A stretch of DNA of 64,000 bases from Leidyana gryllorum EB-2025a (Eukaryota > Protista > Apicomplexa), in contig JBLWGC010000216.1 in NCBI GenBank assembly GCA_048772705.1, positions 124,001 to 188,000 on the forward strand, in the 5' to 3' direction. The translations under genes and the position numbers were made by a program. Below are positions 4,001 to 27,400 of the stretch, one piece after another (within the stretch, counting starts at the first letter, position 1; each line of letters starts with the position of its first letter). Under the pieces are notes generated by a model that was not told the origin of the DNA, did no database searches, and saw only the letters and a program-made list of their open reading frames with translations.

Positions 4001-7000
4001 CAACTCCGTACACAAAGGTGAGTTCGGGTTTGCCGGGCCAGATGGCTTTCCCATCAACTGGACGGCGGGGGTATCGCCACAGACACACCGAAGGTTTCAG
4101 TCCATCAATTCTCAGGAAATCGACATCGTTCAATCGCTCCTTATCCTCAGCCACCAATCTGTCGAGTACGAAGCTGATTGGATCTTCGCGTGGAGGCAGA
4201 GGTTTCTGATAGCAGAACTGGTTGTCCTGTTGGCGTTCGGCATCGGTTCTGTGGCTATGGGCGCAGGCAAAGTTTGACAGCCCCAGCGGTTCCGGTCTGA
4301 CTTGGCCTCGTTCGTTCCAGCAGTCTCCAATGGACTCTGCCCCGAGGGCGGGATCAACTTGGTCGGGGGCCAACCACCCGACCAAAGTTGGCTCGGCGCG
4401 ATATATCTCACTGATAGTGGGAGGAGCTCTGTTTCGGATATTCTCCACTTCTGCTGCAGTGTATTGCGCTCTTTCATTTCCTGACCGCATGAAGGCAGCA
4501 AGCCGCAGGAACCGATAGATCCACTCGAGATCTAAGGTCACTCCATCGGCTTTGAGCGGTGCCTGACAGCAGAAGATGGGTGTCAGTAAATCCTTATTGG
4601 CGTGGGCACTGGTGAGTATTTCGTGCAAAGTCTTCTCGATGACCGACTCGAAAGATTGATGCTGATTGGTGGTGGGGTTTGACTCCTCGTCTTCAGGTTT
4701 TTGAGTAGTGGCAGCTTCCATGGGAACGAGTACTTTGCCGCCCGGCAAGTTGAACGTTCTGATGGACAGGAATCGATTCATCGCGCTGCTGTACCGAAGC
4801 AAAGTGGTCATAACGGGTGCTGTGACCTGAATGGCTATCGGAGAGTCAACGTCGGCGAATCTACTCGTATCGCGGTGACGACTCTCTCCAGGAGACACAG
4901 ACCGGAACGCGGCGTCCATTGCTTCATCGATCTTTGGACAGCTCTGAAACTCGGACCATTGAGACGCGGCCAACTGTCCAACTGTGATGGCTTTGACAGT
5001 CACATGCACGGGCTCGCCGGTGACCCAATGTTTGAAAGAGTACTGCAGAGGCTCGACGAGCGGAGATTGCAACAATACCGTACACGGCTGCAACACTGTC
5101 AGTGGGTCAGCGTCTTCCACCAACCGAAGGCCGGGGAATGCACAGCATCCCGGCCTCCCCTCAGCAGCGCGTTGCTCCATAAGTTTATGAATGTGTTTCC
5201 CGTACGCTTTGGCTCTCAGTCTGCGACTGTAGACATTGCGCTCCTGATCTCTGAGCCGTTTAATCTCCTCCGGATTGAACTTTGTAGCCGCCCTCTCCCC
5301 GTCTTCCCCCTCCGGCGCGGGCTCTGCGGCTGCGGCCTCAGCTTCCCCGGGGCCGTCGTCCGAGTCGTTGTCAACGGTGAGCAACACCCCCGGCCAGTAA
5401 TCTTCTGGGGCAAAGACTCCGCCCGCTTCTGCAATGTATTGTACCATTGCATCAGGGGGCTGACAGGGAGAGTTGGGATTGTGATGGAGACGCCAGAACC
5501 CAAACAATCCACCCGCCTTGAGTACCTCTGAGTCCCAACGCTCAACCCTCATGTAAACGTGGTGTGGGTACAACACTCTGACCAGCTCCTGATCCGGAGC
5601 TTTCGCCTCTTCGTCCCTCAAAAACGTCTTGCGACGGTTGTCGGGTTCACTACGTATGTCTTCGAGTCGCACTCCATTCGGCAGCCATAGCTTCGAACTG
5701 TTCTTCACCACCTCGACCTCCTCTCTACGCGCAGTGAGCGGGTTCGACATGTAGAATACGTCTGTCTTGGCCAGTTGAATGGCGCTCGGCAACTCCACCG
5801 TCTCAGTCTCCGGGTCCACAAAGTAATCTCCCCGACACACCACCTCGATTTGAGAGCTGCTTGCAGCTGCAGTCTTGGAGAAGTATCTATGGATTGGGGG
5901 TAAAAGTGGCAGTGGACTTTCTCGGAAAAGAGTGTCATGTGGGCCCTGAACCCCTCCTCGGACCTTCTGGCTAGTCAAAGCATAATGGGGGAGGGGGCCG
6001 GGCGGCGGGAGATAGTGATCGTCGAGAACATTGAACTGCGAACAATACAGTGGTTCGAATTTGGGCCCAAAATGAACTTACCTTTTGGAGCTCGGTGAGG
6101 ATACGCCCTGCCAGGACGTTTCTCGCAAAGTTACGATCTGAGAAATTGTCGTGGAGGGAAACAGTGGTTGAGAACGGGTACGAAGGGCCATCTTCGCGCG
6201 ATCTGTGGCCATATATTGGTGGCAGACTGACACGAATCTCGTTTCTGTTCCACCCCAGATTCTGTCGGATCAATCAATTTTTGTCCAATAAGAGTAATTG
6301 AGCGACACCCAATCTTACCGAGAAATAAGAGGTCGATCCTCTGGCCTTGAGGTATCGGCGGAGCTCAAATTCGCAAGCGAACCCTTCTTCGTTCTTATGC
6401 TGGAGGAGTTGGTCCATCACTGACTGCAGAGTCGCCATAGCTCTGTTCCACGGTATGAGAGCTCCCGACTTTTCGTTGTACAAAGCCAAACTGCGGGCCT
6501 CCGCAATGCTTTTCGGAGGGACCGCGGCGAGCTGATTCTGTGCCTCCTTCTGCCGACGCAGCTCTTTCTCTCTGAGCTGTTCACAGGTTTTCAGAACCAG
6601 TTGCTCCAGCCGCTCAAAGCCAACCAGGGCAGCCACAGGCGCATAGTTACACCGCAAACTCAGCAAATAAAACTTGGAGTTACTCTGTCGTGCGCGACCT
6701 CGACTTTGGAGGAATTGGGCGAGGGTCTGCGGCAGATCGAATCTGACCACAGCGTTACAGGCCGGGAGATCAAACCCTTCCTCTATAATGGAGGTCGCAG
6801 TGATAGTTTGTAGGGAGCCGTGATCTTCGAATCTCGACGTGAACAACCGTAAACGATTGCGTTGCTCATTAATGTTGATCGTGGGTAATGCGCCATCGAG
6901 ATGTTTCTCTCTGCGTATGGAGGTATCGGTCAATTCCTGGCCGTGGGCCTGCGAGGCACCGCCTATACCACAGACCCAACTGGTTTTCGAGGCAAATCGC

Positions 7001-10950: not shown

Positions 10951-11139
10951 CTCCCCCACTCAAAAAACCCCGAAAAGTCTACCATTGTAGTCGTCGTCTT
11001 GACAGACAGCGCGCAGCCGACCTCCACTCACCGGGTTCAACCGAGATTCCGAATCCCAAGTGTATTCATGGCCAGATACGCCTGTGGGGTCCAGCAGAAC
11101 GATGAGTCAAAAAATCGCAATTAGCAGCCGGCTCGATCG

Positions 11140-11604
11140 ATGGCCTGGGACACCTTTCTACGTAAGCTCTTCAAATTGCAGCCAACCCCCGCACCGGAAT
11201 GCCCAATATATCGCATGATTTGCTCGTTACGGGATCACTTGGCGGCCTTTGTTCAGGCTGAGTACGATAGCCATTGTGCCGACTATGCGATGGGCGAGGA
11301 AGAACGGCGTGGTGCTCAGTCTAATCCATACACGATGGACAATGTGAACATTCTGATTTCACTAATCGAGGATTTCGCCGACAACCTGCGTGGGAAGCTG
11401 ACGCCTATGAGTATTGAAGAAGTGCGAGAAGCAATTCATCGTCTGGTGAACGATCTGAATACTTTTCACTGTATGAACTTCGCCTTGTGGTCAAGTGAAT
11501 CGGTGCAGATTTGCCACATCATCTTAGCTGTGACTGACAAAACAGGGTTCAGTCGTCACGAGGCAAGCCTTATTATACAAGATAACTGTGCATTTAATTG
11601 GTGA
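11140..11604 (+). CDS. small acidic helical protein, array paralogue 1 (divergent)
   Basis: Intronless 154 aa ORF with the family motif NPYTMDNVNILISLIEDF...VREAIHRLVNDLN...IC..I; ends in W. Confidence 0.75.
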   Translation: MAWDTFLRKLFKLQPTPAPECPIYRMICSLRDHLAAFVQAEYDSHCADYAMGEEERRGAQSNPYTMDNVNILISLIEDFADNLRGKLTPMSIEEVREAIHRLVNDLNTFHCMNFALWSSESVQICHIILAVTDKTGFSRHEASLIIQDNCAFNW

Positions 11605-11791
11605 CTGGGGTTTCTATTGGCAAATTCGCACAACAGAAGACTGCGCCAAGTCTTTGTTATCAGTGGATTTAGTTACCTTTCTATTAAAAGTTGGCATTTT
11701 TAGTCACATCGCAGATTAGCAGAAACGGTTGGCCAAGACAAGTGTGTACTGGGTGCGAGCTTGCTTTCAAAAGCGAGTTAGTCTGGTGGTA

Positions 11792-12268
11792 ATGACTTGG
11801 GACGTTGCAGTTCAAAGGCTGTTCGGGGTCAATCCAAAGCCGACTGCGCAGCACGAGTCAATTGATATATCCGACCTCGACTCATTGATTCTCACGTTTG
11901 AGAATTCGTTGGCAGAACGCAAGAATTTGCTGTACGAAGAATACGTTGATGACTGTGAAATTGATGGTCAAGCTCCGGACGATGATCATCCCTATACAGC
12001 TGCTAATGTGGGGGTCTTCATGAATACGTTGTACAAGTTTCTGGAGAAGTTGGCCAACGGGATCGTTACTAAAGAGTCTGAATTGAAGCAGGAAATCAAC
12101 GAATTGATCAGTGATGTCTGCGTTATCCAATGCAAAGCTTTTGAATTAAGCATGACCCAAACAGAAGCCTTGGAAGCGGTGGTAAAGGCTGCTGCCGATA
12201 TGGTGATAACGAATGGAAGGATTCTAGCTACAGAAGTATTGAAGGACAACAATTTCTGGCAGTGGTAA
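11792..12268 (+). CDS. array paralogue 2 (divergent)
   Basis: ATG at 11792 gives MTWDVAVQRLFG, similar to paralogue 1 (MAWDTFLRKLF). Contains HPYTAANV...F; ends DNNFWQW. Confidence 0.75.
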   Translation: MTWDVAVQRLFGVNPKPTAQHESIDISDLDSLILTFENSLAERKNLLYEEYVDDCEIDGQAPDDDHPYTAANVGVFMNTLYKFLEKLANGIVTKESELKQEINELISDVCVIQCKAFELSMTQTEALEAVVKAAADMVITNGRILATEVLKDNNFWQW

Positions 12269-12412
12269 TCGCTTTTAGGGTCGTAGTTAAAGATACGAAC
12301 ATTGAAGCAGCGTCACGAGGGATTATAGAGATAAACTGACCAACTCGGGATAGGACACGTGGAGACAGCTCGCACCACACGATTCGCACCACACGACTTG
12401 TACCGCGCTGAG

Positions 12413-13018
12413 ATGGGAAGTTCACACTCACGAAGCAAGTGGCGCTATAGAAAACCATCGGACGTGCCCGCATGGGTCAAAGAATCCCCAGTACCTATTC
12501 TGATATTCAACCTTGGTATTCAAATACACAATATTGCCGAATCCAGGCTTGATGAACTCCTGGAAAAGGCGAAAGCCCGCAACACGCCAGAGACAGAGAT
12601 CGACCATCCCTATACCAAAGAGAAACTTCAGAAGCTGATAGACATAATGCAAGAATTTTACTATGGGATGAGTTGGGAAGACAAGAAACATGCTCACAAA
12701 GGTACACTGTTGCGAGAGTCAAGTTCGAAGGTGGCAAGATGGACGCACTCAGCATTCGCCTTGCCGATGACGACAATTGACTTAATCCTTGACATCTTCA
12801 TGACCACAGCCAAAGAAGCAGGATTGGATGTGGTGGACTCCTTCCTTGCGGTTGCGACCGGCGGCATCGAAGCCTGGGAGAAGTTGCCACACTACGCCGA
12901 CTTACGTGAGGGAGCAGTCCTCTTTGGTAATAGGCGGGTATTGCCACCCAGGTGCCCGCCGATTACCAACGAAATGTACGCGGACGTTTTGCGCAAAAAA
13001 TATGTCTGGCGAAGCTGA
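12413..13018 (+). CDS. array paralogue 3, N-myristoylation-like start and C-terminal extension
   Basis: Starts MGSSHSRSKWRYRK; contains DHPYTKEKLQKLIDIMQEFY and A..AGL motifs. Confidence 0.65.
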   Translation: MGSSHSRSKWRYRKPSDVPAWVKESPVPILIFNLGIQIHNIAESRLDELLEKAKARNTPETEIDHPYTKEKLQKLIDIMQEFYYGMSWEDKKHAHKGTLLRESSSKVARWTHSAFALPMTTIDLILDIFMTTAKEAGLDVVDSFLAVATGGIEAWEKLPHYADLREGAVLFGNRRVLPPRCPPITNEMYADVLRKKYVWRS

Positions 13019-13430
13019 TGTCCGGAAAGAGGGTACCGGATCTGTTCGATCCGCACAAGAGCGGATTTCATCTTTCCGTGACCAACTTCTGAGATATATT
13101 GATGTCTGTGCGGAGTATGAGCCGGACGCTGCACCACCATACGCAACTGAAGATATCGATACACTCGTACTCTTGCTCCAGAACTTTCTGACTCGACTGC
13201 ATGAGAGCCGGTCAGTAGTTGAGAGTCTTGAGCGGACGAAGAGTCGAATCGAGGCTGAGGTGAAGACCCTCGTGTTGAAGATCAATGACTTTGATTCCAC
13301 TCGTTACCAATTGGAAACGAATGAAGCAGAGGCCATTTGTGATATAGTGTCTAGTGCTGTTGTCGAAGCGGGATACGAATTCGATGATACGGACACTGGT
13401 GACTTGACGGAACCTTGGCGTACTTGGTGA
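13002..13430 (+). CDS. array paralogue 4
   Basis: ATG at 13002 (MSGEADV). PPYATEDIDTLVLLLQNF...EVKTLVLKIN...LETNEAEAICDIV...AGYEFDD...DLTEPWRTW. Confidence 0.8.
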   Translation: MSGEADVRKEGTGSVRSAQERISSFRDQLLRYIDVCAEYEPDAAPPYATEDIDTLVLLLQNFLTRLHESRSVVESLERTKSRIEAEVKTLVLKINDFDSTRYQLETNEAEAICDIVSSAVVEAGYEFDDTDTGDLTEPWRTW

Positions 13431-13577
13431 AAATTGTTTTGAGGCGCGACGCCCGCACACAGATCAGATCAGTGTACATCTTTTTGTAGATTTCTTACTC
13501 ATTCCATTTTGTGTGTTTGGTTCATCACCACATTGCGCGCTACCGAGTCAAATCACTAGTGTTAAGGTTACTCTACA

Positions 13578-13781
13578 ATGCGTTTCACTGCTCTCTTTGC
13601 CTGTTTCCTGGTCGCCGCGGCTACCGAGACTAACACCAAGTCTCTGATCCACTCGCGCCTGAGTGTTCAGCACCCCCTTGACGAAGTCGACATTCGCGCC
13701 CAACAAGACGCTAACCATGAAGCTGCCCGTCAAGCACTAAACGAATATTATCTCCGTCACGGCCGCTCTAGGAAGCTCTGA
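13578..13781 (+). CDS. small secreted peptide (67 aa)
   Basis: MRFTALFACFLVAAA is signal-peptide-like and is followed by a ~50 aa peptide with a basic tail (RHGRSRKL). Confidence 0.5.
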   Translation: MRFTALFACFLVAAATETNTKSLIHSRLSVQHPLDEVDIRAQQDANHEAARQALNEYYLRHGRSRKL

Positions 13782-14015
13782 GTTGATCTATTATGAAAGG
13801 AAGGTCTGTGTATGTGCTGTGTCGTCAACAATGCCACCAAAGGTCATCAAAGTCCTCCATGTGAAGGACTCGTGAATGTGACTTTTCACATGCTTTTTGT
13901 GTAAAACGCCTATGCGCCAACTATTGTTCGCCAAACTCGTTATTGACAGCTTCCGAGTGTGTGGCTAAGAGATGGCACCAAAGCACTAATTTCTGTTATT
14001 TTCAAAAAACAACCA

Positions 14016-14435
14016 ATGGCTCGACATAATCCGCTGACGCCTCAACTGGCAGAGTTGCGCCGTATGCTGGAAGTCTATCGGGAGATCTGTTTGAGTAATA
14101 GGTGTCGTGTTTCCCAAGAGGGGCCGTCCACGCTGGGTAACAAGACCGGTGAACCTTACTCTTTAGCGGACATTGCCGACTTGATTGGTCAGTTGGAAAG
14201 CTATTACCGCCGACTGCGTGGTGACCGTACCGCGACCTGGACCAAGGCACAGATCCGGCAGGAGGTGAAGAGAATAGTGATGAAAATGAATGAGATCTGT
14301 GAGGAAAAGGGTATGATAGAGACGGGAGAGCGGGACGTTATTTGTCAGTTCATTAATGACGCGGCGGTTCTGGCGGGTTACACCTTCGAGCGAGGCGAGA
14401 TCACAGATCTGACGGAAGAGTGGAGGGATTTTTGA
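14016..14435 (+). CDS. array paralogue 5
   Basis: ATG at 14016. EPYSLADIADLIGQLESYY...IRQEVKRIVMKMN...MIETGERDVICQFI...AGYTFERGEITDLTEEWRDF. Confidence 0.82.
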   Translation: MARHNPLTPQLAELRRMLEVYREICLSNRCRVSQEGPSTLGNKTGEPYSLADIADLIGQLESYYRRLRGDRTATWTKAQIRQEVKRIVMKMNEICEEKGMIETGERDVICQFINDAAVLAGYTFERGEITDLTEEWRDF

Positions 14436-14478
14436 TTTACCCCAAAAAAGAATAGTTGATTCTGGGGGCTGTTGAGAA

Positions 14479-14865
14479 ATGGGAGAAACCGACCCGGTTC
14501 CAGGCCTCATTGAGAGCTTAAAAGAGACGATGCAAGAATACAGAGAGAGGTGTATGGAGGATCGCGACCAACTGGAGAACAAGTATACAGTGGAAGAGAT
14601 AGACAAGTTCATCGATACCATGAGACAGTATCACGAAGTTCTCGGTGGGAACAGAGCTAAGAAGCTCAGCGACAACGAGATTAGAGGGCATATCAAGGAA
14701 TGGGTCGTCGCGGTCAATAAATTCGCCGAGGAGGACAGGTGTATGATTGAAACAGAAGAGCGGGAGGCAGTGAGTGACATTATATACCAATCAGCCCTAC
14801 TGGCCGGATACCGATTGGATGAGGAGGGTTTTTACGAAATGACTCGGCCCTGGAGAGAATTTTGA
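14479..14865 (+). CDS. array paralogue 6
   Basis: KYTVEEIDKFIDTM...MIETEEREAVSDII...LAGYRLDE...MTRPWREF. Confidence 0.82.
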   Translation: MGETDPVPGLIESLKETMQEYRERCMEDRDQLENKYTVEEIDKFIDTMRQYHEVLGGNRAKKLSDNEIRGHIKEWVVAVNKFAEEDRCMIETEEREAVSDIIYQSALLAGYRLDEEGFYEMTRPWREF

Positions 14866-15007
14866 CATTTGGGTTCATTGATCGAAGTATAATTGACAAT
14901 GACTCCAAATAAGAAAGTGGAAGATCTTCTTCCATAGCAGCAGCGGCAGCAGCAGCAGCAGCACACACTTGATCTATGTTTCTGGCAAAAAATAGGTCAT
15001 TGGTGCG

Positions 15008-15364
15008 ATGGCAAAGAATGAATTGTCACTTGGGGATCTGCGACAAACTTTGGAGGAGTATAGGGCTGAATGGATTGAGGAAGGCGGCAGGCAGCGAGGG
15101 GATGTGGAAGAGCCCTTCACTCTCGCCGACATCGACAATGTGATGACTCTTTTGGGAAACTTGACACGAGAGCGTAGAGCGAATTGTTCCGCAACCTTCA
15201 CTTCACAAGCGATAAGGGCGTATCTCGTAGAAGCGGTTTTTGAGTGGTCTGACAATGCTGCGGATGCTGAATATGTGATCGAGACTGAAGAATTTGAAGC
15301 AATCTGCAAAATGGTTCACGAAACAGCCCATTGGTTGGGCGAAAACCGAGTATCTACAACTTGA
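15008..15364 (+). CDS. array paralogue 7, C-terminally truncated (possible decaying copy)
   Basis: EPFTLADIDNVMTLL...VIETEEFEAICKMV is present, but the terminal WRx[FW] motif is missing. Confidence 0.65.
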   Translation: MAKNELSLGDLRQTLEEYRAEWIEEGGRQRGDVEEPFTLADIDNVMTLLGNLTRERRANCSATFTSQAIRAYLVEAVFEWSDNAADAEYVIETEEFEAICKMVHETAHWLGENRVSTT

Positions 15365-15626
15365 GATAAAATCGGCTTAAATGAGTCGCTACTACATCAT
15401 TGTGCAACACAAACTTAAATGACGACGCCGCCGCTGCCGCCATAGTCAGGCTCAAAAGAGAGACATCTCAAGGCCGACTGGCAGCAGCAGAACGGACGTT
15501 AAACAGCTGTAGAATTTTCATTTGATCCAACAACAATCCTCTGACAGTTCAGCAATGTTAATTCAGGAGGAGATGTTGTGTCTATTTCTGATACCAAAAG
15601 TGGGGACGACACTTTGGTGGCCTAAG

Positions 15627-15673
15627 GACAAAGTCAGGCGGTGACAAAGTCATGCGGTGACAAAGTCATGCGG
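15627..15673. repeat. 3 x 16-bp tandem repeat GACAAAGTCA(G/T)GCGG(T)
   Basis: Read directly: copies at 15627, 15643 and 15659, in the gap upstream of paralogue 8. Confidence 0.85.
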
Positions 15674-15878
15674 ACTGGCAGTGTCGGTATAATCACAGTA
15701 ATCCACTCATAGCGTTCGCCATACCGAGACGACGCAGATAGACAACAAGCAGATGCAACAAGCAGATGCAATCTCCACATCGTACCCCACCACGACCACC
15801 AAAGAGGACAGTAACGATGTTCTAATCAAATGTCCGTTGCCTTTGAGTGACAAAGCAGTAAAAAAAACTGCTATCGCC

Positions 15879-16268
15879 ATGGGAGATATGACACGTCATC
15901 CAAGACCCATTCCCAAGCTGCAAAAAGAGCTGCGCGATTGTATCGAGAGCTATCGCAAAGGCTTCATAGACGACAATCGTCCTGAGCCATACTCAGTCGC
16001 CGATATTGAACGTCTCATGGCCCTTCTGGACTCATTTTACCGTTCGATGTGCCAAGATCGGACCTCTCCTCTGACCAAAGCGCAGATTCGACAGGAGGTG
16101 GAGGACGTGATTGTGAAAATCAATCTCATTGCTGACGAGACCTGTATGATAGAGACGGGAGAGCGCGAGGCCATATGCGAAATCGTACAGACGATTGCGA
16201 TATCGGCCGGATATACGTTCGACGAAGGCGAATGCCCCGACATTACGGAAGAATGGAGAGACTTTTGA
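15879..16268 (+). CDS. array paralogue 8 (closest to paralogue 5)
   Basis: ATG at 15879 (alternative 15753). EPYSVADIERLMALLDSFY...TKAQIRQEVEDVIVKIN...MIETGEREAICEIV...AGYTFDEGECPDITEEWRDF. Confidence 0.82.
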   Translation: MGDMTRHPRPIPKLQKELRDCIESYRKGFIDDNRPEPYSVADIERLMALLDSFYRSMCQDRTSPLTKAQIRQEVEDVIVKINLIADETCMIETGEREAICEIVQTIAISAGYTFDEGECPDITEEWRDF

Positions 16269-16503: not shown

Positions 16504-19500
16504 TTAAAACACCATCACTCCGCCAGCCAACAATGTCGTCGCTGTCAAAGCCATCAGAGAATGCTTCAATACAGATTGAGAACCACACGTTGAAGTACGC
16601 CATAAAACTGCACATCGATCCGCAGTCTGGCATCCCATCTCGTAATTGGGGTTCAAACACCAAAAACATCCAGGCTCTGCTGAACAAGCGCCGCACGTTC
16701 GCTTCAGAGAACACTGGGGGGAAACTAATCCCGAATCAGTTGACATCAAATCACTCGTCAACATGGACGACATACTGTACGACGGGGTCACAAATCCTGA
16801 ATAATTGCCTTCCGGCGTGAAATGCTCGTCCAAACTCAATGTCGTTAATAGGGTACTGCCTTTGTAATAACTTGAACTTGACGTCTCCCAATCGCTACTC
16901 GTAATCGTCGCGTTACTCCACATTGTTGTCGTACCAGTGAGCCATACCGTCTCACTGCCGCCGTAATCCTCACTCAACGTCATCTCCTCGCTCCTGCTTG
17001 TGAACACACTCGACATACTCACTGTCCAACTTCCCATTGGCATCGATGTAGTCTCCTCACTGAAATCGTCAGTCTCTGTCGTCATACCCTCACTACTTGT
17101 CGACTCTTCCCAGATGGTGACCTCTGTGGTGTCCGTTGCTGATGTTCTTGGCTCCTCAGGCCCTGTCATGGACGCCTCAGTCGCGGTCGTGGGCTCCTCA
17201 CTCGTCTCAGTGGGCTCCTCAAGGGTGGTCGGCAGCTCTTCAGACATCGTCGTCGGCTCCTCCGTATTGGTGGTCTCTGTTGTCTCATCGGTCACCGTCA
17301 CTGTCGTCGGCTCCTCCGTGGCCACCTCTGTTGTCTCTTCAGCTACTGTCGTCAACTTCTCGGTATTGATCTCTGTTGTCTCTTCAGTTGACGACGCCGG
17401 CTCTTCGGTGGAGCGCGTAAACTCCTCAGTGGTCGTCGTGGGTTCCTCATTTGTGGTGGTGGGCTCTTCGGAGGGCGTCGAAGGTTCTTCGGTCCCAGTC
17501 GTAGGCTCCTCGGTGGTCGTGGTAGGTTCCTCAGTCGTAGTCGTAGGCTCCTCGGAGGTCATCGAGGGTTCCTCGGTAGTCGTTGTGAACTCCTCAGTCC
17601 CAGTCGTAGGCTCCTCAGTCGTTGTGGTGGGCTCTTCAGTCGCGGTCGTGGGCTCCTCAGTCGTAGTCGTGGGCTCCTCGGTGGTCGTTGTGGGCTCCTC
17701 AGTGGTGGTCGTCGAGGGTTCCTCGGTAGTCGTTGTGGACTCCTCAGTCCCAGTCGTGGGCTCCTCAGTCATTGTGGTGGGCTCCTCAGTCGCAGTCGTG
17801 GTCGTAGGCTCCTCGGAGGTCATCGAGGGTTCCTCGGTAGTCGTTGTGAACTCCTCAGTCCCAGTCGTAGGCTCCTCAGTCGTTGTGGTGGGCTCTTCAG
17901 TCGCGGTCGTGGGCTCCTCAGTCGTAGTCGTGGGCTCCTCGGTGGTCGTTGTGGGCTCCTCAGTGGTGGTCGTCGAGGGTTCCTCGGTAGTCGTTGTGGA
18001 CTCCTCAGTCCCAGTTGTGGGCTCTTCAGTCACGGTCGTGGGCTCCTCAGTCGTAGTCGTGGGCTCCTCGGTGGTCGTGGTAGGTTCCTCAGTCGTAGTC
18101 GTGGGCTCCTCGGTGGTCGTTGTGGGCTCCTCAGTCGTTGTGGTGGGCTCCTCAGTCGCAGTCGTGGGCTCTTCGGGGGTCGTCGAGGGTTCTTCGGTAG
18201 TCGTTGTGGACTCCTCAGTCCCATTCGTGGACTCCTCGGTCGCAGTGGTGGACTCCTCAGTCGCAGTGGTGGGCTCCTCAGTCGCAGTCGTGGTCGTAGG
18301 CTCCTCGGAGGTCATCGAGGGTTCCTCGGTAGTCGTTGTGAACTCCTCAGTCCCAGTCGTAGGCTCCTCAGTCGTTGTGGTGGGCTCTTCAGTCACGGTC
18401 GTGGGCTCCTCAGTCGTAGTCGTGGGCTCCTCGGTGGTCGTGGTAGGTTCCTCAGTCGTAGTCGTGGGCTCCTCGGTGGTCGTTGTGGGCTCCTCAGTGG
18501 TGGTCGTCGAGGGTTCCTCGGTAGTCGTTGTGGACTCCTCAGTCCCAGTCGTGGGCTCCTCAGTCATTGTGGTGGGCTCCTCGGTGGTCGTGGTAGGTTC
18601 CTCAGTCGTAGTCGTGGGCTCCTCAGTGGTGCTCGTCGGCTCTTCTGTCGTTGTCGTGAGCTCCTCGGTGGTCGTAGTGGGCTCCTCAGTGGTCGTCGGC
18701 TCCTCAGTGGTAGTAGTGGGCTCCTCAGTGGTCGTCGGCTCCTCAGTGGTGGTCGTCGGCTCTTCTGTTGTTGGCGTGAGCTCCTTGGTGGTCGTGGGCG
18801 CCTCAGTCGTCGTGGTGGGTTCTTCAGTCGTCGTAGTGGGTACTTCAGTCGTAGTCGTGGGCTCCTCAGTGGTCGTAGTGGGCTCTTCATTGGTAGTTGT
18901 GGGCTCCTCAGTGGTGGTCGTCGGCTCTTCTGTTGTTGTCGTGAGCTCCCCGGTGGTCGTGGGCGCCTCAGTCGTCGTGGTGGGTTCTTCAGTCGTCGTA
19001 GTGGGTACGTCAGTCGTAGTCGTGGGCTCCTCAGTCGTCGTGGTGGGCTCCTCAGTGGTCGTTGGCGCCTCAGTGGTCGTTGTGGGTTCTTCGGTCGTCG
19101 TGGTGGGTTCTTCAGTCGTCGTGGTGGGCTCCTCGGTGGTCGTCGTGGGTTCCTCGGTGGTGGTCGTCGGCTCCTCAGTGGTCGTTGGCGCCTCAGTGGT
19201 CGTAGTGGGCTCCTCAGTGGTCCTCGTGGGCTCTTCGGTGGTCGTCAGCGCCTCAGTCGTCGTGGTGGGCTCCTCAGTCGTCGTGGTGGGCTCCTCAGTG
19301 GTCGTTGGCGCTTCAGTCGTCGTGGTGGGCTCCTCAGTCGTCGTGGTGGGCTCCTCGGTGGTCGTTGGCGCCTCAGTGGTCGTTGTGGGTTCTTCGGTCG
19401 TCGTGGTGGGCTCTTCGGTGGTCGTCGTGGGCTCCTCGGTGGTCGTCGGCGCCTCAGTCGTCGTGGTGGGTTCTGTAGTGGTCGTCGTCGGCTCCTCAGT

Positions 19501-22500
19501 CGTTGTCGTGGGCTCCTCAGTGGTCGTTGGCGCTTCAGTCGTCGTGGTGGGCTCCTCGGTGGTCGTAGTGGGCTCTTCGGTGGTCGTCGTGGGCTCCTCA
19601 GTGGTCGTCGTGAGCTCTTCGGTGGTCGTCGTGGGCTCTTCTGTCGTTGTCGTTGGCGCCTCAGTGGTCGTAGTGGGCTCTTCGGTGGTGGTCGTCGGCT
19701 CTTCTGTCGTTGTCGTTGGCGCCTCAGTGGTCGTAGTGGGCTCCTCGGTGGTCGTCGGCGCCTCAGTGGTGGTCGTGGGCTCCTCGGTGGTGGTCGTGGG
19801 CCCCTCAGTGGTGGTCGTCGGCGCCTCAGTGGTCGTAGTGGGCTCCTCAGTGGTGGTGGTGACGTCGTCACAGACCTCTATGATAGAATGGTACAATTGG
19901 TGGAGAAGATTACGACCGGAAGTTGCGATATTGACAGCAGACCGGTTGGGAATAGCAGCGAATAGATTCTTCCAGGCCACTGCGTTCGCACTCCCGGCCA
20001 CGCGTTCGTCTTCGGACAGAGCAGTGAGAAGCGTTATAGGCTTGACTTGGTTGGCTCGGAAGTGTTCCAGAAGCTGTGTTGTATCAATGGACTGATTGGG
20101 CCCTTCGTTGGCCACGAAGACGGCCACTCTCAAGACATCGTCGCCCGACCGCCAGTTGGTGTCGATGAGATTAGAAGCGCATTGGTGCAGATTTGAGTGG
20201 TCTGAGGACTTATCTTGGGATAGATTGCTGGCGGCGAGCATCTCGTCGTCGAAAGTGCGAATGTTGAGATCGTGATCTCGGAGTAGATCGACAGGGAGAC
20301 CAAAGTGTTTATCGGGATCGACGATCTGATCATCGTGCCAGAGATCCAGGAACCCGAAGTGCGTTGGTTCTACGCATGTCTCTTGATCGTCGGCGACCCA
20401 CAGAGTTTTGTGTCGGATGTCGAATGGGAGCAGATCAAAGCGTAGAATTTGTATTGCGTGGCGGATGTATCTGGCGATATGAGGACGTTTAGTCCAATCT
20501 CCAAGCACGACGATGTCGAGCTTATCTCTGGGAGTACAGGAGTCAATGACGTCTCCGTGGCGGGAACGGGGCGTGTCGTCGGTGGGGGTAAGACGTCGCT
20601 GTTGGGGGAGTTTTCGAGGATGGGCGACGGGCAGAGTCTCGGCCTCGCGGGGAATATGGTGTCGGCAGTTCCGAAGAGCCGCTTGAGCAGTAAATTCCCA
20701 GACATTGAACCCGGTGGGATTGATCGGTTTGATGATGACGGCGGCATCCAACCCCACTTGCCAAAGAATGTGAGACCAGTTGAACCAGTGGGTGGGATGG
20801 GCGGTCAGAGGATTGTTGGTGGAGGCATAGGGCACTGCGATGACCAGATGTACGTTCCGATCATAGATTGCGTCGGTAATGCGGCGAAGGAGGTCGTAGA
20901 CGTGTTGGTTCACAGGTGGGGGATCGTGGGAAGTGAAGATTAGTACCCATCCTTCTTCGGGAGTTAGATCAGTCTGCTCCAAGAAAATTCTCTGTAACTC
21001 TATCCAGAAGGGATGATCCTGTGCGTCGTCGTTAGAGTTCGACCAGTCAATCTCAGGAGTGGGATAATCCTGTTTTGCTAACCAATTTGGATCGCCTTCG
21101 CCGAGGGCTGCTGCGTAGTCGTCATCCGACCGATGTCCGCATTGCAGACTGATAGGTACACCGCTCCAATCGAGCTGATCCCAGGTACCGGGTGAACCTC
21201 TTATGACATCGCCCCCTTCCGAGGTGAGATGTGTCATACTGAGGCTTTTGGTGAGAGTGGAGGTGTCAACAGCCATTTGTTTGCGGAGACAGGTCAGCAG
21301 GGAATCGAGTCTCCATCGACTCTGATCCAACATGAGATGAATGGAAGAGGAAGGCGGTTTCTCAGTGTTCATCGCACCCTTCCGGTTGGGGCAGAGGTTG
21401 ACTATGGGGTCCCATACAAACCCAGGAGACGGGAGGAACTCAGCGTCACAAGATTGGATGATTTTATAGTTTAGCCAACGGGGATATTCAACGAAACTCT
21501 GACTGAATAGATCGGTGTGGAATCTCGGATGATTGTTAGTGAGACGCGGCAAACTGTCTTTGATCTCGCGACCGCTGAAAGTGTAAGTTGGATCCACTCC
21601 CCATTGAGCGATTGATATATGTGCAGCTGCTGAGTTGAGCACAGTATTGATATTCGCAGCAAAAATGTTGCGGTCATAATCGCCCGGCTGGTCAAACGTC
21701 ATAAAAACCATTCCAGCTCGACCCTGAATCTGAATGTCCATATTGTAAGCCAGACACTGTAGAATTCCGTAGTCCTCGCCGGCTCTGTGTCCGGCCTCAT
21801 ACAGAGCCGTCTCCGCCTCGAAATCCTGCGTCAGAGTGGTGTCATTGTTTCGAACACTCATTTTCCAGTCGCTGCCCGCCACTTCAGGACTCGCGTGTGT
21901 CATCTGGTACAGATAGCTCGGGATCACATTCTCAAACTGACGTGCGGGATAGATCATGTAACAGTATGTGTCAGCACCGCGCGACACGATATACCAAGTT
22001 TCCCATAAAGAGGGGTACTTTCGCTGTTCTCGCCACCCTATGACTGCTTGCCGTCCGGCGAAGCCGAGCATCCGAGTGGCGGTCCCAGATCGGCGATCCA
22101 AGGTGTAGAAGGTTGGGATCGTGAGTCGAAGATCACAAATCTCAGCGATCTCTCTGTACGGTACCATAAGATCATGGGCACGAACTCGCGGCGATAAAGC
22201 GAGAACTTGAGACACTCGCTGTACTGTGGAGTGCCAGATCTGATATCCAGACGGATTGTACCCATCCACAACTGGAAGGCCATCTATGTTCCATCGATAA
22301 AGGAACTCTCGCCAGTCATTCCTGACCGCATTTGTGGCCAAGTCTTGTGGTATGCGAATGAGCAGTCGGATTTCCCCGTGAAAGATTCTGTCTCGCAAAC
22401 GTTTGACCACTCGTTGATCGCCGACCCATTTGGGAGGGGGAGAGTGGGTGAAGAGCACCAAAAAAGCGCCTTTCGGCAGCTTCTCCGCTTCGTGAGCCAA

Positions 22501-24417
22501 TGCGTCCAATACGGTCCATCGGTCGTCTCCGACAACGTGGCTGGGAGGTTCCCAACTGAATTGATAGGAGGCATCGGTCTCATCAGAATTCTCAAACCAT
22601 CCTCGAGCCTGAGTCCAGGTGAGCGCCAAATCATAGTCGACTACGTCGTCGCACACGGCCCCAAAGTCTATAGGCTTATCGAGAGTCGAGGCCTTCTCAC
22701 CACCAGCCCACTCAACAAAGGTTCGGCCCTCTGGGGCAGTTCGGTCATAAAACATTTGTAGTTTGATGCAGTCGAGAGACCGCTCGAATCTGTTCGGTAT
22801 CACTGAGGGAGACGAGTGGTCCGCCATGATGGTGATAGAGTCTGTGTGGGTCAGCTCGGCAGGTAGCCGCCAGGTGCCTCTCTTGTAGGTATTACGCTGT
22901 TGTTTCAGACACATTCCCGCAATGAGAGAGTACAAAGCTGCCCCAAAATCAATGAGGTCGGGGTGAACAATTTCCCGATGATGCCGCCATCGTCTCAACA
23001 GGTCTCCATCGAGTGTATCGTGAAAGAGAGACGCCGGTTTATTGGTGCTCTTATCCACAGAGATACTGATATACCCAATTTCAGCGAGCGGCTTGTTGCC
23101 ATTGGGGAAGGAGTACCACCACGGAGAGTCCTTTCCGACCATCACTAAGGTCGAATCCAATCCTCGGGTCAGCGACACCATGAATTTGTGAGAATCCGTT
23201 GGGACGCGACCCCACAGCACCGACTCAACCTCGACGATCAGTTGGTCCATACACGAACTCCACCAGTTCACCTCTTCCGACTTGTCGATATCGTCAAAGG
23301 AATGCATCAACTCATACAGATCGGCTTGCGGAGGCACATCACTCCATTCACCGTTTTCATTCATGAGATCGGTCCAATCCTCGCTGTTCAACAGGTTGCT
23401 GATAGCCTCTGCGCCCGAACTCCACTGGCCAGAGAAACGATCACAGCGTCCACGATTGAGCGCTAATGTCAATGAGGCCGATAAACCCGCACGTTCCCAC
23501 GCCGCAACTATCGGTATGAAAGCTGATCGGAATGCAATGGCCAAAGCGGGATTTTCAAGTGGGTTGGCGACGAGATTCATAGAGATTGGCCGATGTCCAC
23601 AAGTCTCAATGAGTTCGTCATACTCGCCAGGCAGGGGCTCGGGAGGTACCGGCGAGGTGTTCCGACACTGCAGCCCGAACGCTGGGCCGAGATCATCCAG
23701 CCAAGCATCTTCACCTGATGGCGTGTAGGTAGTGACGACTGCATCACCGTCGAGACCCAGTGCCCATACACGTCTCTTCCAGGCCAGCGCGCGACGTTCC
23801 TTCCCGTCGTCGCTGGAATGCGTTGGGACGCCAATAACCATTACATTGTTTCGTTGAGTGATGAGAGTTGTGATGTGATCTTTTTGTTCTTTGGTCGGAT
23901 ATGGAGGCAGAGTGGTTGCCATGACAAAGAGGGCGGCATTTTCTGGTAGAGTACTCAGAGCCCTGAATGTTTCAATGATCACTTCCCATAAAGGAGACTG
24001 TTCTTCCTCAAAGTCCCGGGTGGCGTCATATGGAGTCGCACGTTCCCAGGTGGATGGGTCGCTCAGATGGCTGCCGAACAGTTGATTGTAATAGTCACGT
24101 GTAAGGCCGGTTTCGCACGGGCTCTGGATCTCCTGGTAGAATCCGGGGCAGCAGGGATAGGAACTCGTGTATACGATGCTGCGAGATCCATCGCGGTGAA
24201 AGTGACTCAGTGTATAAAACAAAGGTGGCAGTACCGTTAGAGCATCGGTTCTCAGTTGGTCGCCAACACACCCCAAACCAAGTTCGTTGTTAATACCTGT
24301 CTCTTGCACTACAATCATGTGTCTTCCCAGCAGCTCGCATGAGCCAATGTCGACATCTTCATCACTCCTCCCGAAACCACCAAATAGAGAGAATAACAAC
24401 AACAAAGTACTGAACAT
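16504..24417 (-). CDS. giant surface mucin/adhesin, 2,637 aa: signal peptide, tandem vWA-like domains, Thr-rich stalk, Cys-rich PSI-like domain, hydrophobic (GPI-like) tail
   Basis: Single ORF starting MFSTLLLLFSLFGG; ~900 aa of (T)TTEEP repeats; CGACSAEPGCFWC motif; ends LMALTATTLLAGGVMVF with no cytoplasmic tail. Confidence 0.88.
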   Translation of the reverse strand: MFSTLLLLFSLFGGFGRSDEDVDIGSCELLGRHMIVVQETGINNELGLGCVGDQLRTDALTVLPPLFYTLSHFHRDGSRSIVYTSSYPCCPGFYQEIQSPCETGLTRDYYNQLFGSHLSDPSTWERATPYDATRDFEEEQSPLWEVIIETFRALSTLPENAALFVMATTLPPYPTKEQKDHITTLITQRNNVMVIGVPTHSSDDGKERRALAWKRRVWALGLDGDAVVTTYTPSGEDAWLDDLGPAFGLQCRNTSPVPPEPLPGEYDELIETCGHRPISMNLVANPLENPALAIAFRSAFIPIVAAWERAGLSASLTLALNRGRCDRFSGQWSSGAEAISNLLNSEDWTDLMNENGEWSDVPPQADLYELMHSFDDIDKSEEVNWWSSCMDQLIVEVESVLWGRVPTDSHKFMVSLTRGLDSTLVMVGKDSPWWYSFPNGNKPLAEIGYISISVDKSTNKPASLFHDTLDGDLLRRWRHHREIVHPDLIDFGAALYSLIAGMCLKQQRNTYKRGTWRLPAELTHTDSITIMADHSSPSVIPNRFERSLDCIKLQMFYDRTAPEGRTFVEWAGGEKASTLDKPIDFGAVCDDVVDYDLALTWTQARGWFENSDETDASYQFSWEPPSHVVGDDRWTVLDALAHEAEKLPKGAFLVLFTHSPPPKWVGDQRVVKRLRDRIFHGEIRLLIRIPQDLATNAVRNDWREFLYRWNIDGLPVVDGYNPSGYQIWHSTVQRVSQVLALSPRVRAHDLMVPYREIAEICDLRLTIPTFYTLDRRSGTATRMLGFAGRQAVIGWREQRKYPSLWETWYIVSRGADTYCYMIYPARQFENVIPSYLYQMTHASPEVAGSDWKMSVRNNDTTLTQDFEAETALYEAGHRAGEDYGILQCLAYNMDIQIQGRAGMVFMTFDQPGDYDRNIFAANINTVLNSAAAHISIAQWGVDPTYTFSGREIKDSLPRLTNNHPRFHTDLFSQSFVEYPRWLNYKIIQSCDAEFLPSPGFVWDPIVNLCPNRKGAMNTEKPPSSSIHLMLDQSRWRLDSLLTCLRKQMAVDTSTLTKSLSMTHLTSEGGDVIRGSPGTWDQLDWSGVPISLQCGHRSDDDYAAALGEGDPNWLAKQDYPTPEIDWSNSNDDAQDHPFWIELQRIFLEQTDLTPEEGWVLIFTSHDPPPVNQHVYDLLRRITDAIYDRNVHLVIAVPYASTNNPLTAHPTHWFNWSHILWQVGLDAAVIIKPINPTGFNVWEFTAQAALRNCRHHIPREAETLPVAHPRKLPQQRRLTPTDDTPRSRHGDVIDSCTPRDKLDIVVLGDWTKRPHIARYIRHAIQILRFDLLPFDIRHKTLWVADDQETCVEPTHFGFLDLWHDDQIVDPDKHFGLPVDLLRDHDLNIRTFDDEMLAASNLSQDKSSDHSNLHQCASNLIDTNWRSGDDVLRVAVFVANEGPNQSIDTTQLLEHFRANQVKPITLLTALSEDERVAGSANAVAWKNLFAAIPNRSAVNIATSGRNLLHQLYHSIIEVCDDVTTTTEEPTTTTEAPTTTTEGPTTTTEEPTTTTEAPTTTEEPTTTTEAPTTTTEEPTTTTEEPTTTTEAPTTTTEEPTTTTEELTTTTEEPTTTTEEPTTTTEEPTTTTEAPTTTEEPTTTTEEPTTTTTEPTTTTEAPTTTEEPTTTTEEPTTTTEEPTTTTEAPTTTEEPTTTTEEPTTTTEAPTTTEEPTTTTEEPTTTTEALTTTEEPTRTTEEPTTTTEAPTTTEEPTTTTEEPTTTTEEPTTTTEEPTTTTEEPTTTTEAPTTTEEPTTTTEEPTTTTDVPTTTTEEPTTTTEAPTTTGELTTTTEEPTTTTEEPTTTNEEPTTTTEEPTTTTEVPTTTTEEPTTTTEAPTTTKELTPTTEEPTTTTEEPTTTEEPTTTTEEPTTTEEPTTTTEELTTTTEEPTSTTEEPTTTTEEPTTTTEEPTTMTEEPTTGTEESTTTTEEPSTTTTEEPTTTTEEPTTTTEEPTTTTEEPTTTTEEPTTVTEEPTTTTEEPTTGTEEFTTTTEEPSMTSEEPTTTTATEEPTTATEESTTATEESTNGTEESTTTTEEPSTTPEEPTTATEEPTTTTEEPTTTTEEPTTTTEEPTTTTEEPTTTTEEPTTVTEEPTTGTEESTTTTEEPSTTTTEEPTTTTEEPTTTTEEPTTATEEPTTTTEEPTTGTEEFTTTTEEPSMTSEEPTTTTATEEPTTMTEEPTTGTEESTTTTEEPSTTTTEEPTTTTEEPTTTTEEPTTATEEPTTTTEEPTTGTEEFTTTTEEPSMTSEEPTTTTEEPTTTTEEPTTGTEEPSTPSEEPTTTNEEPTTTTEEFTRSTEEPASSTEETTEINTEKLTTVAEETTEVATEEPTTVTVTDETTETTNTEEPTTMSEELPTTLEEPTETSEEPTTATEASMTGPEEPRTSATDTTEVTIWEESTSSEGMTTETDDFSEETTSMPMGSWTVSMSSVFTSRSEEMTLSEDYGGSETVWLTGTTTMWSNATITSSDWETSSSSYYKGSTLLTTLSLDEHFTPEGNYSGFVTPSYSMSSMLTSDLMSTDSGLVSPQCSLKRTCGACSAEPGCFWCLNPNYEMGCQTADRCAVLWRTSTCGSQSVLKHSLMALTATTLLAGGVMVF
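17140..19860 (-). repeat. coding minisatellite (18/21-bp units encoding TTTEEP/TTTTEEP)
   Basis: More than a hundred units are visible, with higher-order duplicated blocks such as two near-identical ~240-bp blocks starting at 17542 and 17803. Confidence 0.95.
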
Positions 24418-24455: not shown

Positions 24456-27400
24456 TCAAATCTGTTGACTGACTAAAGAGGGTCGTCGACGGGCTCTCCC
24501 GAGTGCAATTAAATCCTCCTCACGGATTCCTCCTTCCTCACTGATAGGAGCGTCCATCTGCAACGATGGAGGGATCCGTGCCTCGCTCAGGTTGTAGTAC
24601 TGCCCGGTGAAATCCAATCTGTTAAGCAGCTTGGTGCTATGGGACCCGTATGATCGCCGACTCAGATCCACCATATGGCTCATAAACTCTGCCAAATGCT
24701 TAGCCGACACTTCCTTCAACGCCATCAGGTACTCTCTATACGAATCACCAGACAGAGTTCTAACGGCTTCTGCACACACAAAGGCAACACTGCGCCCGTT
24801 CTGCCGAATCTTCGTCGGCACTGCATGTGCAGTACCCAGAGATCTGCCACGAGCATTCTCCTTTCCAACACACCAACAACAACAACTCACCCCAGAAAGT
24901 CGTACGCTCGCACGAACAAAGTGCAATCGTTTACCATCCGCAGCATTAACGTCAGACTTTCGCTCTGTCGGCAAAGAGAGAGTCAAATCAGTCAGTGTGT
25001 GGGTCGGCTGTACACTCACATCGGTCAGGAAGAATTGGTACATAATGCTGTACAGCGTTTTATGGTGGAGATCTGCGAGTTCCTGGAGAGACTGAACTTT
25101 GGTGCTGGCAGCACGGAACTCCTCAATCGCCGGTTCCAGGACCTCCTCTGTCATATAAGTGAGAAGATTGGTGATGAGAGGCGCGACATCTTGACGGAAT
25201 TGCATCAACTCCAAAAGGATAGTGCTCTGTTCCTCTTTGGGCAAAAGTCTGTCGTACCGATATATCAGACTCAGATCTCTCCACAACAAGGCCAAATGTT
25301 TCTGTGACACAGTCACAGCAAACAGTAACCGAAAGATGTTCTGGAGAGCGACAATAGTCTTCATATCAAAGAACTGCGCCACTCATTATGAATGCTCGGC
25401 AACGCCATCGATCAACTCACGATTTGGAGCGGCCACGGCAAGTCCACAAAGTAGGTCAGATGGTGAGCGGCAATCGTGCCCTTCGGCGGCAAGTCCGACA
25501 TCATCCCGTGCAGTCTCCACCACGTAGGAGCGTTGGCCATGAACGGTTTCCGGGGAGACTGCATCAATTTCAGCTCAGTGAAGTATCTGACGAGGGCCAA
25601 GTCGGCAGCATTAGTCTCAATGCCCGACTCCTTTACAAACCCCAGAATTGTGGGAAAGTAGACGGACTCTCTGAAATCACTCTCCATTCGGCTCTGAGGT
25701 GCCGCGAACGCTCGAGGGTCAGTACTCCGTCGACCCTTAGTGTTGGCAACAATGGCACTCTGAGCGCCAATATCCACACCACCCGGACCATCACGAGGTT
25801 TCCACACTGGATCACACCACCTCGACATTGTCTGCGAAACTCGTTGTCAAATGGAGACAGACAGAGGGAGGGGGCGATGAACGGTCGGGGCACTCACGAG
25901 TATCGAAATTTGACTGTTCGAAAGAGACACAGAGTCGCGGTAAATGTCAGAGTGTACTGTGGAGGACCGAATGGCTTTGGCAAACTTGGCGGACAACGCC
26001 TCCATATTGGGGAACTTTGATGCCAAATCTTCTTCGGCTAACTCGAGAAAGTCTCCAACGAGATCCGACCTGCAGCGAGCGGAGGAGAGTGGTCGAAAAG
26101 TTGATCGATTGTTCTGCCGACTACTGCTCACTGAGTCATAAAGTAGAATGTGTGTGCAGACTTTATACGCCCGGCCAGATCACACTTCTCCACCAGCCTG
26201 CTATACAGTACCATCTGACTGTAGCTGGATATCTTGTCAACCTGAGCGAGCGCATTGGGGCTCTCAAACTGTATATGTTCGAATTGAAAGTCACGTCTGC
26301 ATGCCGCATATTCTTCCTCTGGTAACCAGTGTTTCAAAGTGTGCCACACACGCCCACAGAGACAGATCTGCAAATGGCGCCCAGTATTGGAGGGACCGCT
26401 AAGAGTCAGCGTTACCTTCTCGGCAACCGATCTGAAAGGTGAGGGTACTCGGCTTTCGACCAGCGTGTAAGCGTGATCCCAATAGAGAAGTCGTTTCAAA
26501 GGGGTGTCGAGTTTGGTCAGTCTCGGGTCAGTCACAATGAAGAATTCGCCCCGAGGGTCGTCCAGAACGCCCTAAATATGTGGCATCGATGGCAAAGGGA
26601 ACTAACTCTCCGTGTCGCACACTAACCTCATAGATCCATTCATTCAGCATTTGCTCAAAGGGCTGAGCGGTGGCGAATATGATGAAGCTGGCCACCGCCC
26701 GGAGAGACGGATTAGACCCGTATTCCAACTTTACTGTCCTCAGAACGTCCATAAGATCCAAACCCTGAACATTGTATGTCATTCGCGCCAACTGACACAG
26801 GAGATTTAACGCTGGTCTGAGAAGGGATCAAAGGATGAAAGAAGATCAGTTTCGTCTCACTTGGCTTCATGGAGGCTCGACCACAGCTTCTGTAACGTCA
26901 AAGCGCCATTGCTGTTCCACGCATCCAACTCGGCAGTCCTCGTCTGACAAAATAAGTGCCCAGTCGCCCAAGTTTCTCTCACCTCCAACTCCTTCAAGAT
27001 ATATTTCATCGCAGATCCCAGTGCCTCGTTCGTCCGCGTTGAAGGCGCGAGCAAATGGTGTTCAGCGACATGACGAATCAACTGAACAGTTGGCAAATGC
27101 TCACAGGCGAGGCCGCCGACGCCGAAGAGCTCACCGAGACTTGGTGTACAATGTCCATTATCTTGTCGCACATCTGCCCAGTTGAAAAGGGCCCATTACG
27201 TCAATCAACAAACACAAAGCTCCACCTCACCTTACGCAGCGACTCGTCGAGCCGTGTTACGCTCTCAAAGTTGTTGGTGACATCGCGAGGTCCTTGCGGC
27301 TCAGACACGCCTCGAGGTGGGGTGATGGCATCAGTACCCAAACATTGGACAAAGGTTTTGTACTCGTGAGAGAATCTCGGACACTCAGCCGGCTCTGCGA

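Follow-up and report, generated by a model that had tools for sequence, protein, structure and literature searches.

A tandem array of eight bacterial-type, immunity-like genes in the apicomplexan Leidyana gryllorum, and a candidate toxin partner of the bacterial family

In the genome of the apicomplexan parasite Leidyana gryllorum EB-2025a (GenBank assembly GCA_048772705.1) we analysed 64,000 nucleotides of contig JBLWGC010000216.1 (positions 124,001 to 188,000, forward strand; hereafter the window). At positions 11140–16268 of the window, on the + strand, eight open reading frames (ORFs) stand in a row, related to one another and, outside this genome, to bacterial proteins. That the array is of bacterial origin and was expanded locally is very likely. 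The reading that we favour, with reasonable rather than high confidence in the whole of it, is that this eukaryotic lineage acquired a single gene from bacteria long ago, that duplication in place after the transfer gave rise to the eight paralogues, and that their present role, toxin binding or protection, would derive from an immunity function. The donor gene would have come from a large but patchy bacterial family of small acidic four-helix bundles of about 115 aa with the pattern PY[ST] ... LN.LN ... IETxxRE ... G ... DxTEEWRxW, and in bacteria this domain most likely serves as an immunity module that neutralises the toxin tip of Rhs/YD-repeat proteins.

The ORFs encode proteins of 118–201 aa from their likeliest ATG starts (copies 1 to 8, or c1–c8; Table 1). 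A hidden Markov model (HMM) of c4, c5, c6 and c8, searched against 900 six-frame segments of the window, recovered c7, c1, c2 and c3 besides its own four copies, and beyond these eight no segment scored below E 0.1. The copies can be aligned over their entire length, and when all six frames of the 15.5-Mb assembly were searched, no others were found. Stop-free runs of at least 118 codons number eight in 5.1 kb of + strand, against 0.33 expected from shuffled sequence (maximum three in 300 shuffles), and the coding share of the block is 69%. The spacers between copies range from -17 to 585 bp and contain neither a toxin nor another gene of the family. The eight tandem paralogues described in a first-pass annotation, which had been made from the letters of the window, are thus upheld by ORFs and HMM alike, as are its description of c1–c3 as very diverged (HMM E-values in Table 1) and of c7 as truncated, since that copy ends before the C-terminal motif.

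Divergence within the array is uneven. c1 retains the PYT motif and the helix pattern and has lost both IETxxRE and the DxTEEWRxW tail; a new N-terminal extension is common to c1 and c2. c3 is the most diverged of the eight, with a 45-aa insertion ahead of the tail, a basic isoelectric point (pI) of 8.9 and an N-terminus, MGSSHS, that resembles a myristoylation start. Downstream of c7 there is no recognisable remnant of the C-terminal motif, and the missing tail suggests that this copy is probably decaying. Judged by protein identity, c5 and c8 are the least diverged pair at 50%, with the remaining pairs at 10–32%. Synonymous sites are saturated between copies, which leaves the ratio of nonsynonymous to synonymous substitution (dN/dS) uninformative; at the DNA level no two copies still have a repeat in common, nor do they share promoter-like repeats. 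Low identities, saturation and the lack of DNA repeats together indicate that the array is old and that c5 and c8 are not the recent duplicates for which they had been taken. Seven full-length frames are still open in spite of the saturation, which points to long retention.

The junctions between some copies are unusually tight. The last 17 nt of c3 overlap the start of c4 (13002–13018), and c6 starts 43 bp past the c5 stop (14436–14478); there is too little room for separate eukaryotic promoters and untranslated regions, suggesting co-transcription, internal promoters or other start codons. Two short tandem repeats lie between copies: a 16-nt unit, GACAAAGTCATGCGGT, repeated 2.9 times at 15627–15673 in the 514-bp spacer upstream of c8, and a 14-nt unit repeated 1.9 times at 12370–12396, just upstream of c3.

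The relatives of the array are bacterial. When 5.8 billion sequences were searched with a profile made only from the window copies, it found nine proteins of about 118 aa (E 3.5e-11 to 5e-7), encoded on bacterial contigs, whose MIETGEREAIC ... DDITEEWREW is almost identical to the ending of c8. An exhaustive profile search gave 771 cluster representatives at E<=1e-3 (356 at E<=1e-10) with IETxxRE...DxTEEWRxW in common. A pattern scan of GTDB, with one genome per species, located relatives in 489 species genomes from at least seven phyla; the loci come from gut Clostridia, Treponema, Verrucomicrobiota, Planctomycetota, Cyanobacteriota, Gammaproteobacteria, Burkholderiales and Chryseobacterium. 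The near-invariant residues of the family (Y, N, I-E-T, R-E, G, D-x-T and W-R-x-W) are present with conservative changes in c5, c6 and c8 and, except for a change of Arg to Ala, in c4; they are absent from c1–c3, and c7 is without the tail part. No bacterial protein exceeds about 35–48% identity to the copies, and with the copies as seeds a scan of metagenomes gave a best full-length match of 33%, with none closer. No eukaryotic relative was seen in the collections searched, in which gregarine data are scarce. Among 2.9 million viral contigs there was one relative, and the idea of a phage-associated family was rejected on that count.

Of 148 aligned family members, 39 match Pfam DUF5713 (PF18977) with E-values of 1e-3 or lower; the best match has E 1.4e-7, and profile positions 13–107 of 107 are covered. 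The window copies are linked to DUF5713 through such intermediate bacterial sequences. c8 scores 16.0 bits (E 0.016) over the full span, under the gathering cut-off of 27.3 bits; most of the nearest bacterial relatives also fall under that cut-off, with hits of 19–25 bits, and c1–c7 have no DUF5713 match at E<=1. The resemblance lies in size, in the all-helical domain and in the full-length profile alignment, and by these scores the window copies and their nearest relatives are a branch at the edge of DUF5713, not curated members. DUF5713 itself has no assigned function, the one paper that names it is silent on this point, and annotated members of the family are all named 'hypothetical protein'. 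Neither the window copies nor the family match any Pfam Imm family, and PADLOC and NCBIfam returned no meaningful match. The first-pass annotation had pointed to a family of small, acidic, DUF5713-like bacterial proteins ending in IETxERE ... DITEEWRxW, and the profile searches show that this bacterial motif exists.

In trees of 244 and 80 rows the window copies lie on one side of a branch with a Shimodaira–Hasegawa-like approximate likelihood ratio (SH-aLRT) support of 97, the window side of the 80-row quick tree being restricted to the four shorter-branched copies; the bacterial side covers many phyla. At a support of 60 the window copies group with the metagenomic proteins P0037 and P0050, which have the same GY[ST]F loop. 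On its 1342-bp contig (ENA ERZ27257346), the P0050 gene has the same orientation as an MNT (NTP_transf_2)/HepT toxin-antitoxin pair and lies 35 bp past it. In composition the array is close to its host, with GC contents of 0.49 and 0.53, GC at third codon positions (GC3) of 0.54 and 0.57, and a codon-use correlation with host genes of 0.905, against 0.86–0.97 for equal-sized random host samples. A single clade with host-like codons argues for one old transfer followed by local duplication. Horizontal gain and subsequent expansion had been proposed at the outset, and agree with finding bacterial relatives only and all eight copies in one clade.

The function of the bacterial family is suggested by a small number of its loci. 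Five independent loci link it to Rhs-type proteins, and the same toxin tip is confirmed in four of them. On two low-GC metagenome contigs (L129 and L157), an Rhs protein (RHS_repeat with DUF6443 or FG-GAP) is followed by an overlapping ORF of 221–227 aa resembling leucine-rich repeats (LRR) and then by the family gene; the two toxins end in a common tip, about 134 aa long, which belongs to no Pfam family. The same tip ends the gene directly upstream of an LRR-family fusion in a Chryseobacterium genome (L090/G001), and is found again upstream of an LRR and family domain in a second genome of Chryseobacterium's bacterial family (G299). In the fifth locus, a 2198-aa SpvB/FG-GAP/RHS/YD-shell protein, the tip of which could not be read, ends in an 11-nt overlap with another LRR-family fusion (P0065). 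The tip has the invariants KYHGKG ... REAFK.EYRRMQTD ... QSPGY ... LQDG and matches no known structure; its model is mediocre (predicted local distance difference test, pLDDT, 62). A GIY-YIG-type nuclease, suspected from motif spacing, was dropped after Foldseek, VIA and a PDB sequence profile returned none. Among 301 genomes of Chryseobacterium's bacterial family, the family domain occurs in 15 and the tip in four; the two with a close tip have an adjacent family domain, and the two with a diverged or partial tip are without one. Taken together, tip, LRR module and DUF5713-like domain look like an undescribed toxin-immunity module of Bacteroidota-like bacteria.

Fusions and gene arrays add to this picture. 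In fusions the family domain is always C-terminal, and its partners are Imm26 (E 6e-13), LRR (four representatives), DUF1266 and a weak Imm42-like region (E 0.018); the Imm26 fusion gene starts 16 bp past a gene of at least 899 aa. The window copies, unlike these members, are single-domain. One bacterial member belongs to a run of seven genes on one strand, in which a weak SMI1_KNR4/SUKH match lies two genes upstream of it. Few cognate loci, many orphans, immunity-domain fusions and same-strand arrays make up the pattern of immunity and polyimmunity described by Zhang et al., 2012 (PMC3482391), and we think it probable that the bacterial family acts as an immunity module.

Some bacterial loci have features of their own. 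Two tandem family domains 1.5 kb apart in one genome (G156:C28:2630–2932 and 4169–4471), each closing a frame of about 303 aa, are a small homogeneous array in bacteria. In Vibrio sp. Of7-15 (L072:800–5200) the family gene lies among eleven small same-strand ORFs, separated by spacers of about 120 bp that start with ...TAAC, end with GCGTTATG and resemble the attC sites of a chromosomal integron cassette array; if they are attC sites, the family would be a mobile cassette in Vibrio. Many members of 140–170 aa start with lipoprotein signal peptides. Ribbon-helix-helix N-termini, noticed by eye in some bacterial members, were not confirmed by Pfam or by a PDB sequence search and were not used.

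The model of c8 is a four-helix bundle (residues 11–31, 40–58, 67–88 and 93–109) with an ordered C-terminal tail (pLDDT 93.7; predicted template modelling score, pTM, 0.86). Bacterial members have a median pI of 4.2, and the window copies, c3 excepted, fall at 4.3–5.3. Fold searches with this model (Foldseek against PDB, VIA, ESM Atlas) returned generic helical bundles and bacterial hypothetical proteins, at best with Z 7.9 and a template modelling (TM) score of 0.63; its neighbours in ESM Atlas were bacterial throughout. When the L129 toxin tip was modelled with its own family domain, the interaction prediction score from aligned errors (ipSAE) was 0.89 in three runs, and the best of three controls scored 0.00. 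The runs had at least 98% of contacts in common, with a partner pLDDT of at least 94. Of 78 solved complexes 51 reached this mark, as did 2 of 108 mismatched pairs; the score supports binding as a statement of model confidence, not as a measurement. On the family side the predicted interface is the signature itself, that is E, T, R and E of IETxxRE with D, E, R and W of the tail, all 88–100% conserved among the bacterial rows; on the other side, conserved residues of the tip are predicted to meet it.

Four of the window copies keep much of this interface. Of its eight core residues c8 and c4 each keep seven (Arg is changed to Ala in c4), c5 keeps six together with a conservative Glu-to-Asp change, and c6 keeps five; c7 lacks the tail, and in c1–c3 nearly all are replaced. 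Because c4, c5, c6 and c8 retain the binding signature, their partner is probably still a toxin domain of this kind, or an endogenous protein in its stead; going by the residues kept, retention of binding in these four is plausible. The replaced signature of c1–c3 may reflect either a new specificity or decay, and c7 is truncated. If toxin binding persists, the likeliest benefit would be that a gut-dwelling parasite is shielded from toxins delivered by neighbouring bacteria.

Table 1. Positions of the array copies, of the spacer next to Dicer (window coordinates) and of the toxin tip (coordinates in the bacterial loci).
Feature	Position	Strand	Remarks
Copy 1 (c1)	11140..11604	+	154 aa; HMM E 2e-9
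Copy 2 (c2)	11792..12268	+	158 aa from ATG; ORF opens 11729; HMM E 2e-7; strongly diverged
Copy 3 (c3)	12413..13018	+	201 aa from MGSSHS; ORF opens 12359; HMM E 2e-3
Copy 4 (c4)	13002..13430	+	142 aa; E-T, E and DxTExWRxW tail retained; signature Arg to Ala
Copy 5 (c5)	14016..14435	+	139 aa; full signature IETGERD ... DLTEEWRDF
Copy 6 (c6)	14479..14865	+	128 aa; signature mostly retained
Copy 7 (c7)	15008..15364	+	118 aa; IETEEFE retained, C-terminal tail absent; HMM E 4e-16
Copy 8 (c8)	15879..16268	+	129 aa from MGDM; ORF opens 15753; nearest of the eight to bacterial proteins
Divergent spacer, Dicer start to c1	10960..11139		180 bp; position only
Toxin tip	L129:4832-5233; L157:4904-5305; L090:2493-2888; G299:C1:823948-824346		tip of Rhs/YD proteins

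Several observations weigh against an immunity-derived role. Of 159 bacterial loci, some 150 have no adjacent toxin; a scan of the 159 for the YD-repeat pattern found an upstream Rhs protein in just two. The toxin tip is absent from three genomes with orphan copies of the family. In the toxin-linked loci the LRR module always stands between toxin and family domain or is fused to the latter, and the LRR part could be the real neutraliser and the family domain a mere accessory. It is unusual for immunity proteins to have polar residues that hardly vary from phylum to phylum, and those of the signature could have a structural role, such as latching the tail. The support for binding comes from a modelled complex, the fold searches gave no structural relative with a known function, and the sister group of the window copies is weakly supported. 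The window array has no adjacent toxin, and a search of the parasite genome with a single query did not find the tip, which is no proof of its absence; an array that lacks a resident toxin partner in this way would resemble a bacterial orphan or polyimmunity locus. Adjacency to toxins had been set out from the start as a check on the bacterial homologues, and its outcome is divided: the neighbourhoods of the best 80 of the 489 GTDB loci are varied and mostly housekeeping (OMP decarboxylase, SRP54, rubrerythrin, ribosomal proteins) and, taken alone, speak against the immunity-like label, and the five Rhs-linked loci speak for it, as do the Imm26 and LRR fusions and the complex model. The label, at first a guess, is now backed in part by evidence, all of it from bacteria.

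These observations bear directly on the alternatives. The bacterial family might be no immunity module at all but a regulator, a chaperone-like adaptor or a ligand binder that occasionally lies beside toxins, with the parasite copies inheriting that role. The many loci without a toxin neighbour, the intervening LRR module and the lack of a match to Pfam Imm families or PADLOC are what this would predict, and a signature conserved across phyla is what one fixed ligand would produce. We nevertheless regard it as unlikely, given the five toxin-linked loci, the Imm26 and LRR fusions, a SUKH neighbour of one member, and a complex model that separates cleanly from its controls at an interface made of the conserved signature; moreover, orphan immunity genes are common in bacteria (PMC3482391). 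The main competitor of protection against gut bacteria starts from the same origin and has the proteins co-opted for an endogenous job, for example binding or regulating one of the parasite's own proteins, with no bacterial toxin involved, much as the SUKH and SuFu immunity domains were taken over in eukaryotes. The age of the copies, evident from their saturated synonymous sites, and their complete adaptation to host codon use fit such a history, and so do the open frames of c1–c3 in the face of a replaced toxin-contact signature, the new N-terminal extension of c1 and c2 and the myristoylation-like start of c3; eukaryote-specific reuse of immunity domains is on record (PMC3482391). Against it, c4, c5, c6 and c8 keep residues of the predicted toxin interface that are 97–100% conserved in bacteria, and a tandem, diverging array fits arms-race genes better than a fixed cellular partner. 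We hold co-option to be somewhat less likely than protection of the parasite against toxins of neighbouring gut bacteria, which we put forward tentatively. The most specific form of that idea, a eukaryotic 'polyimmunity locus' in which a captured Rhs-toxin immunity gene diversified into an array that neutralises gut-bacterial toxins in the cytoplasm, is at present doubtful.

Two further explanations appear very improbable. The block might be an assembly artefact or contamination from bacteria, or its genes might be dead relics that do nothing, as the bacterial affinity of the genes and the truncation of c7 could be taken to imply. However, eukaryotic genes flank it both upstream and downstream on a contig that is at least 188 kb long, the window is without any N, and composition and codon use are host-like, so that contamination or a chimeric join is very unlikely; the modest identity to bacterial proteins, the eight diverged copies in one clade and the seven full-length frames open despite saturation also argue against this explanation. 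The first-pass annotation had also seen the array and its neighbour Dicer as a candidate defence island, perhaps antiviral, which would be co-regulated from the divergent spacer and act on viruses or other invaders. What favours this is position, as c1 and Dicer, on opposite strands, start 180 bp apart. To our knowledge, clustering of defence genes is a bacterial rule and no established eukaryotic one. The family has no known link to nucleic-acid defence, PADLOC and the viral contigs gave the results described above, and the bacterial neighbourhoods have no RNA-silencing or antiviral theme. The divergent spacer is the only thing that the array and Dicer share, and we find neither the Dicer-linked island nor the antiviral role supported.

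The surroundings of the array are eukaryotic. Upstream, on the opposite strand, DEAD, Helicase_C and two RNase III domains are spread over ORF blocks that represent a multi-exon Dicer, and its division into at least three such blocks shows that the gene has introns. The array copies, by contrast, align to bacterial proteins end to end without a break and are intronless, so that the reported juxtaposition of intron-free copies and an intron-bearing gene is correct. Downstream, the - strand carries a giant mucin-like gene of 2637 aa (16504–24417) with hundreds of TTTEEP-type Thr/Glu/Pro repeats, whose non-repeat head has no Pfam match. A 1031-aa ORF on the + strand (17000–20095), with a Val/Ser/Gly repeat, is the antisense shadow of this gene and not a gene itself. 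Adjoining the mucin-like gene is a eukaryotic housekeeping gene, also on the - strand (24456–25382), with the C-terminal domain of a gamma-tubulin complex component (E 4.6e-15).

Comparison with known systems shows where the likeness ends. Bacterial members of the family resemble the immunity proteins of polymorphic toxin systems in being small, in following Rhs-type toxins, in their fusions to Imm26 and LRR, in their same-strand arrays and in being often orphan; they differ in falling outside the Pfam Imm families and in that most of them are not toxin-linked. Polyimmunity loci, polyimmunity fusion proteins and LRR immunity proteins have been described in such systems, along with immunity families transferred to eukaryotes, namely fungi and Naegleria (PMC3482391). 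The window array is like a homogeneous polyimmunity locus as defined there, with at least four tandem paralogues in the same orientation, short spacers and no toxin in between. That concept was defined for prokaryotes, whereas this array is eukaryotic, a single query found no cognate toxin tip in its genome and its immunity role is putative. SUKH proteins have an alpha+beta fold and are widespread in eukaryotes; the array family differs from them in its predicted four-helix bundle, has no sequence relation to them and was seen in one eukaryotic genome only. Described in PMC3113570 as a bacterial immunity superfamily recruited by eukaryotes and viruses, SUKH (Smi1/Knr4) offers a precedent for a bacterial immunity domain that entered eukaryotes and expanded there, and a weak SMI1_KNR4 match lies near one member of the family.

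That bacterial toxin-immunity domains enter eukaryotes is already known. Few cases exist in which a captured gene has retained the signature for toxin binding and multiplied into a tandem, diverging array, and none has been described for apicomplexans. If our reading is true, protists living amid dense gut bacteria would be defended by the bacteria's own antidotes, an innate protection against bacterial contact-dependent weapons of a kind so far not demonstrated in protists. Apart from the parasite, the analysis gives a large uncharacterised bacterial family at the edge of DUF5713 its first function open to testing, together with a cognate toxin tip that Pfam lacks; if the copies do neutralise toxins, the Rhs tip and its small helical binder would make a tractable pair.

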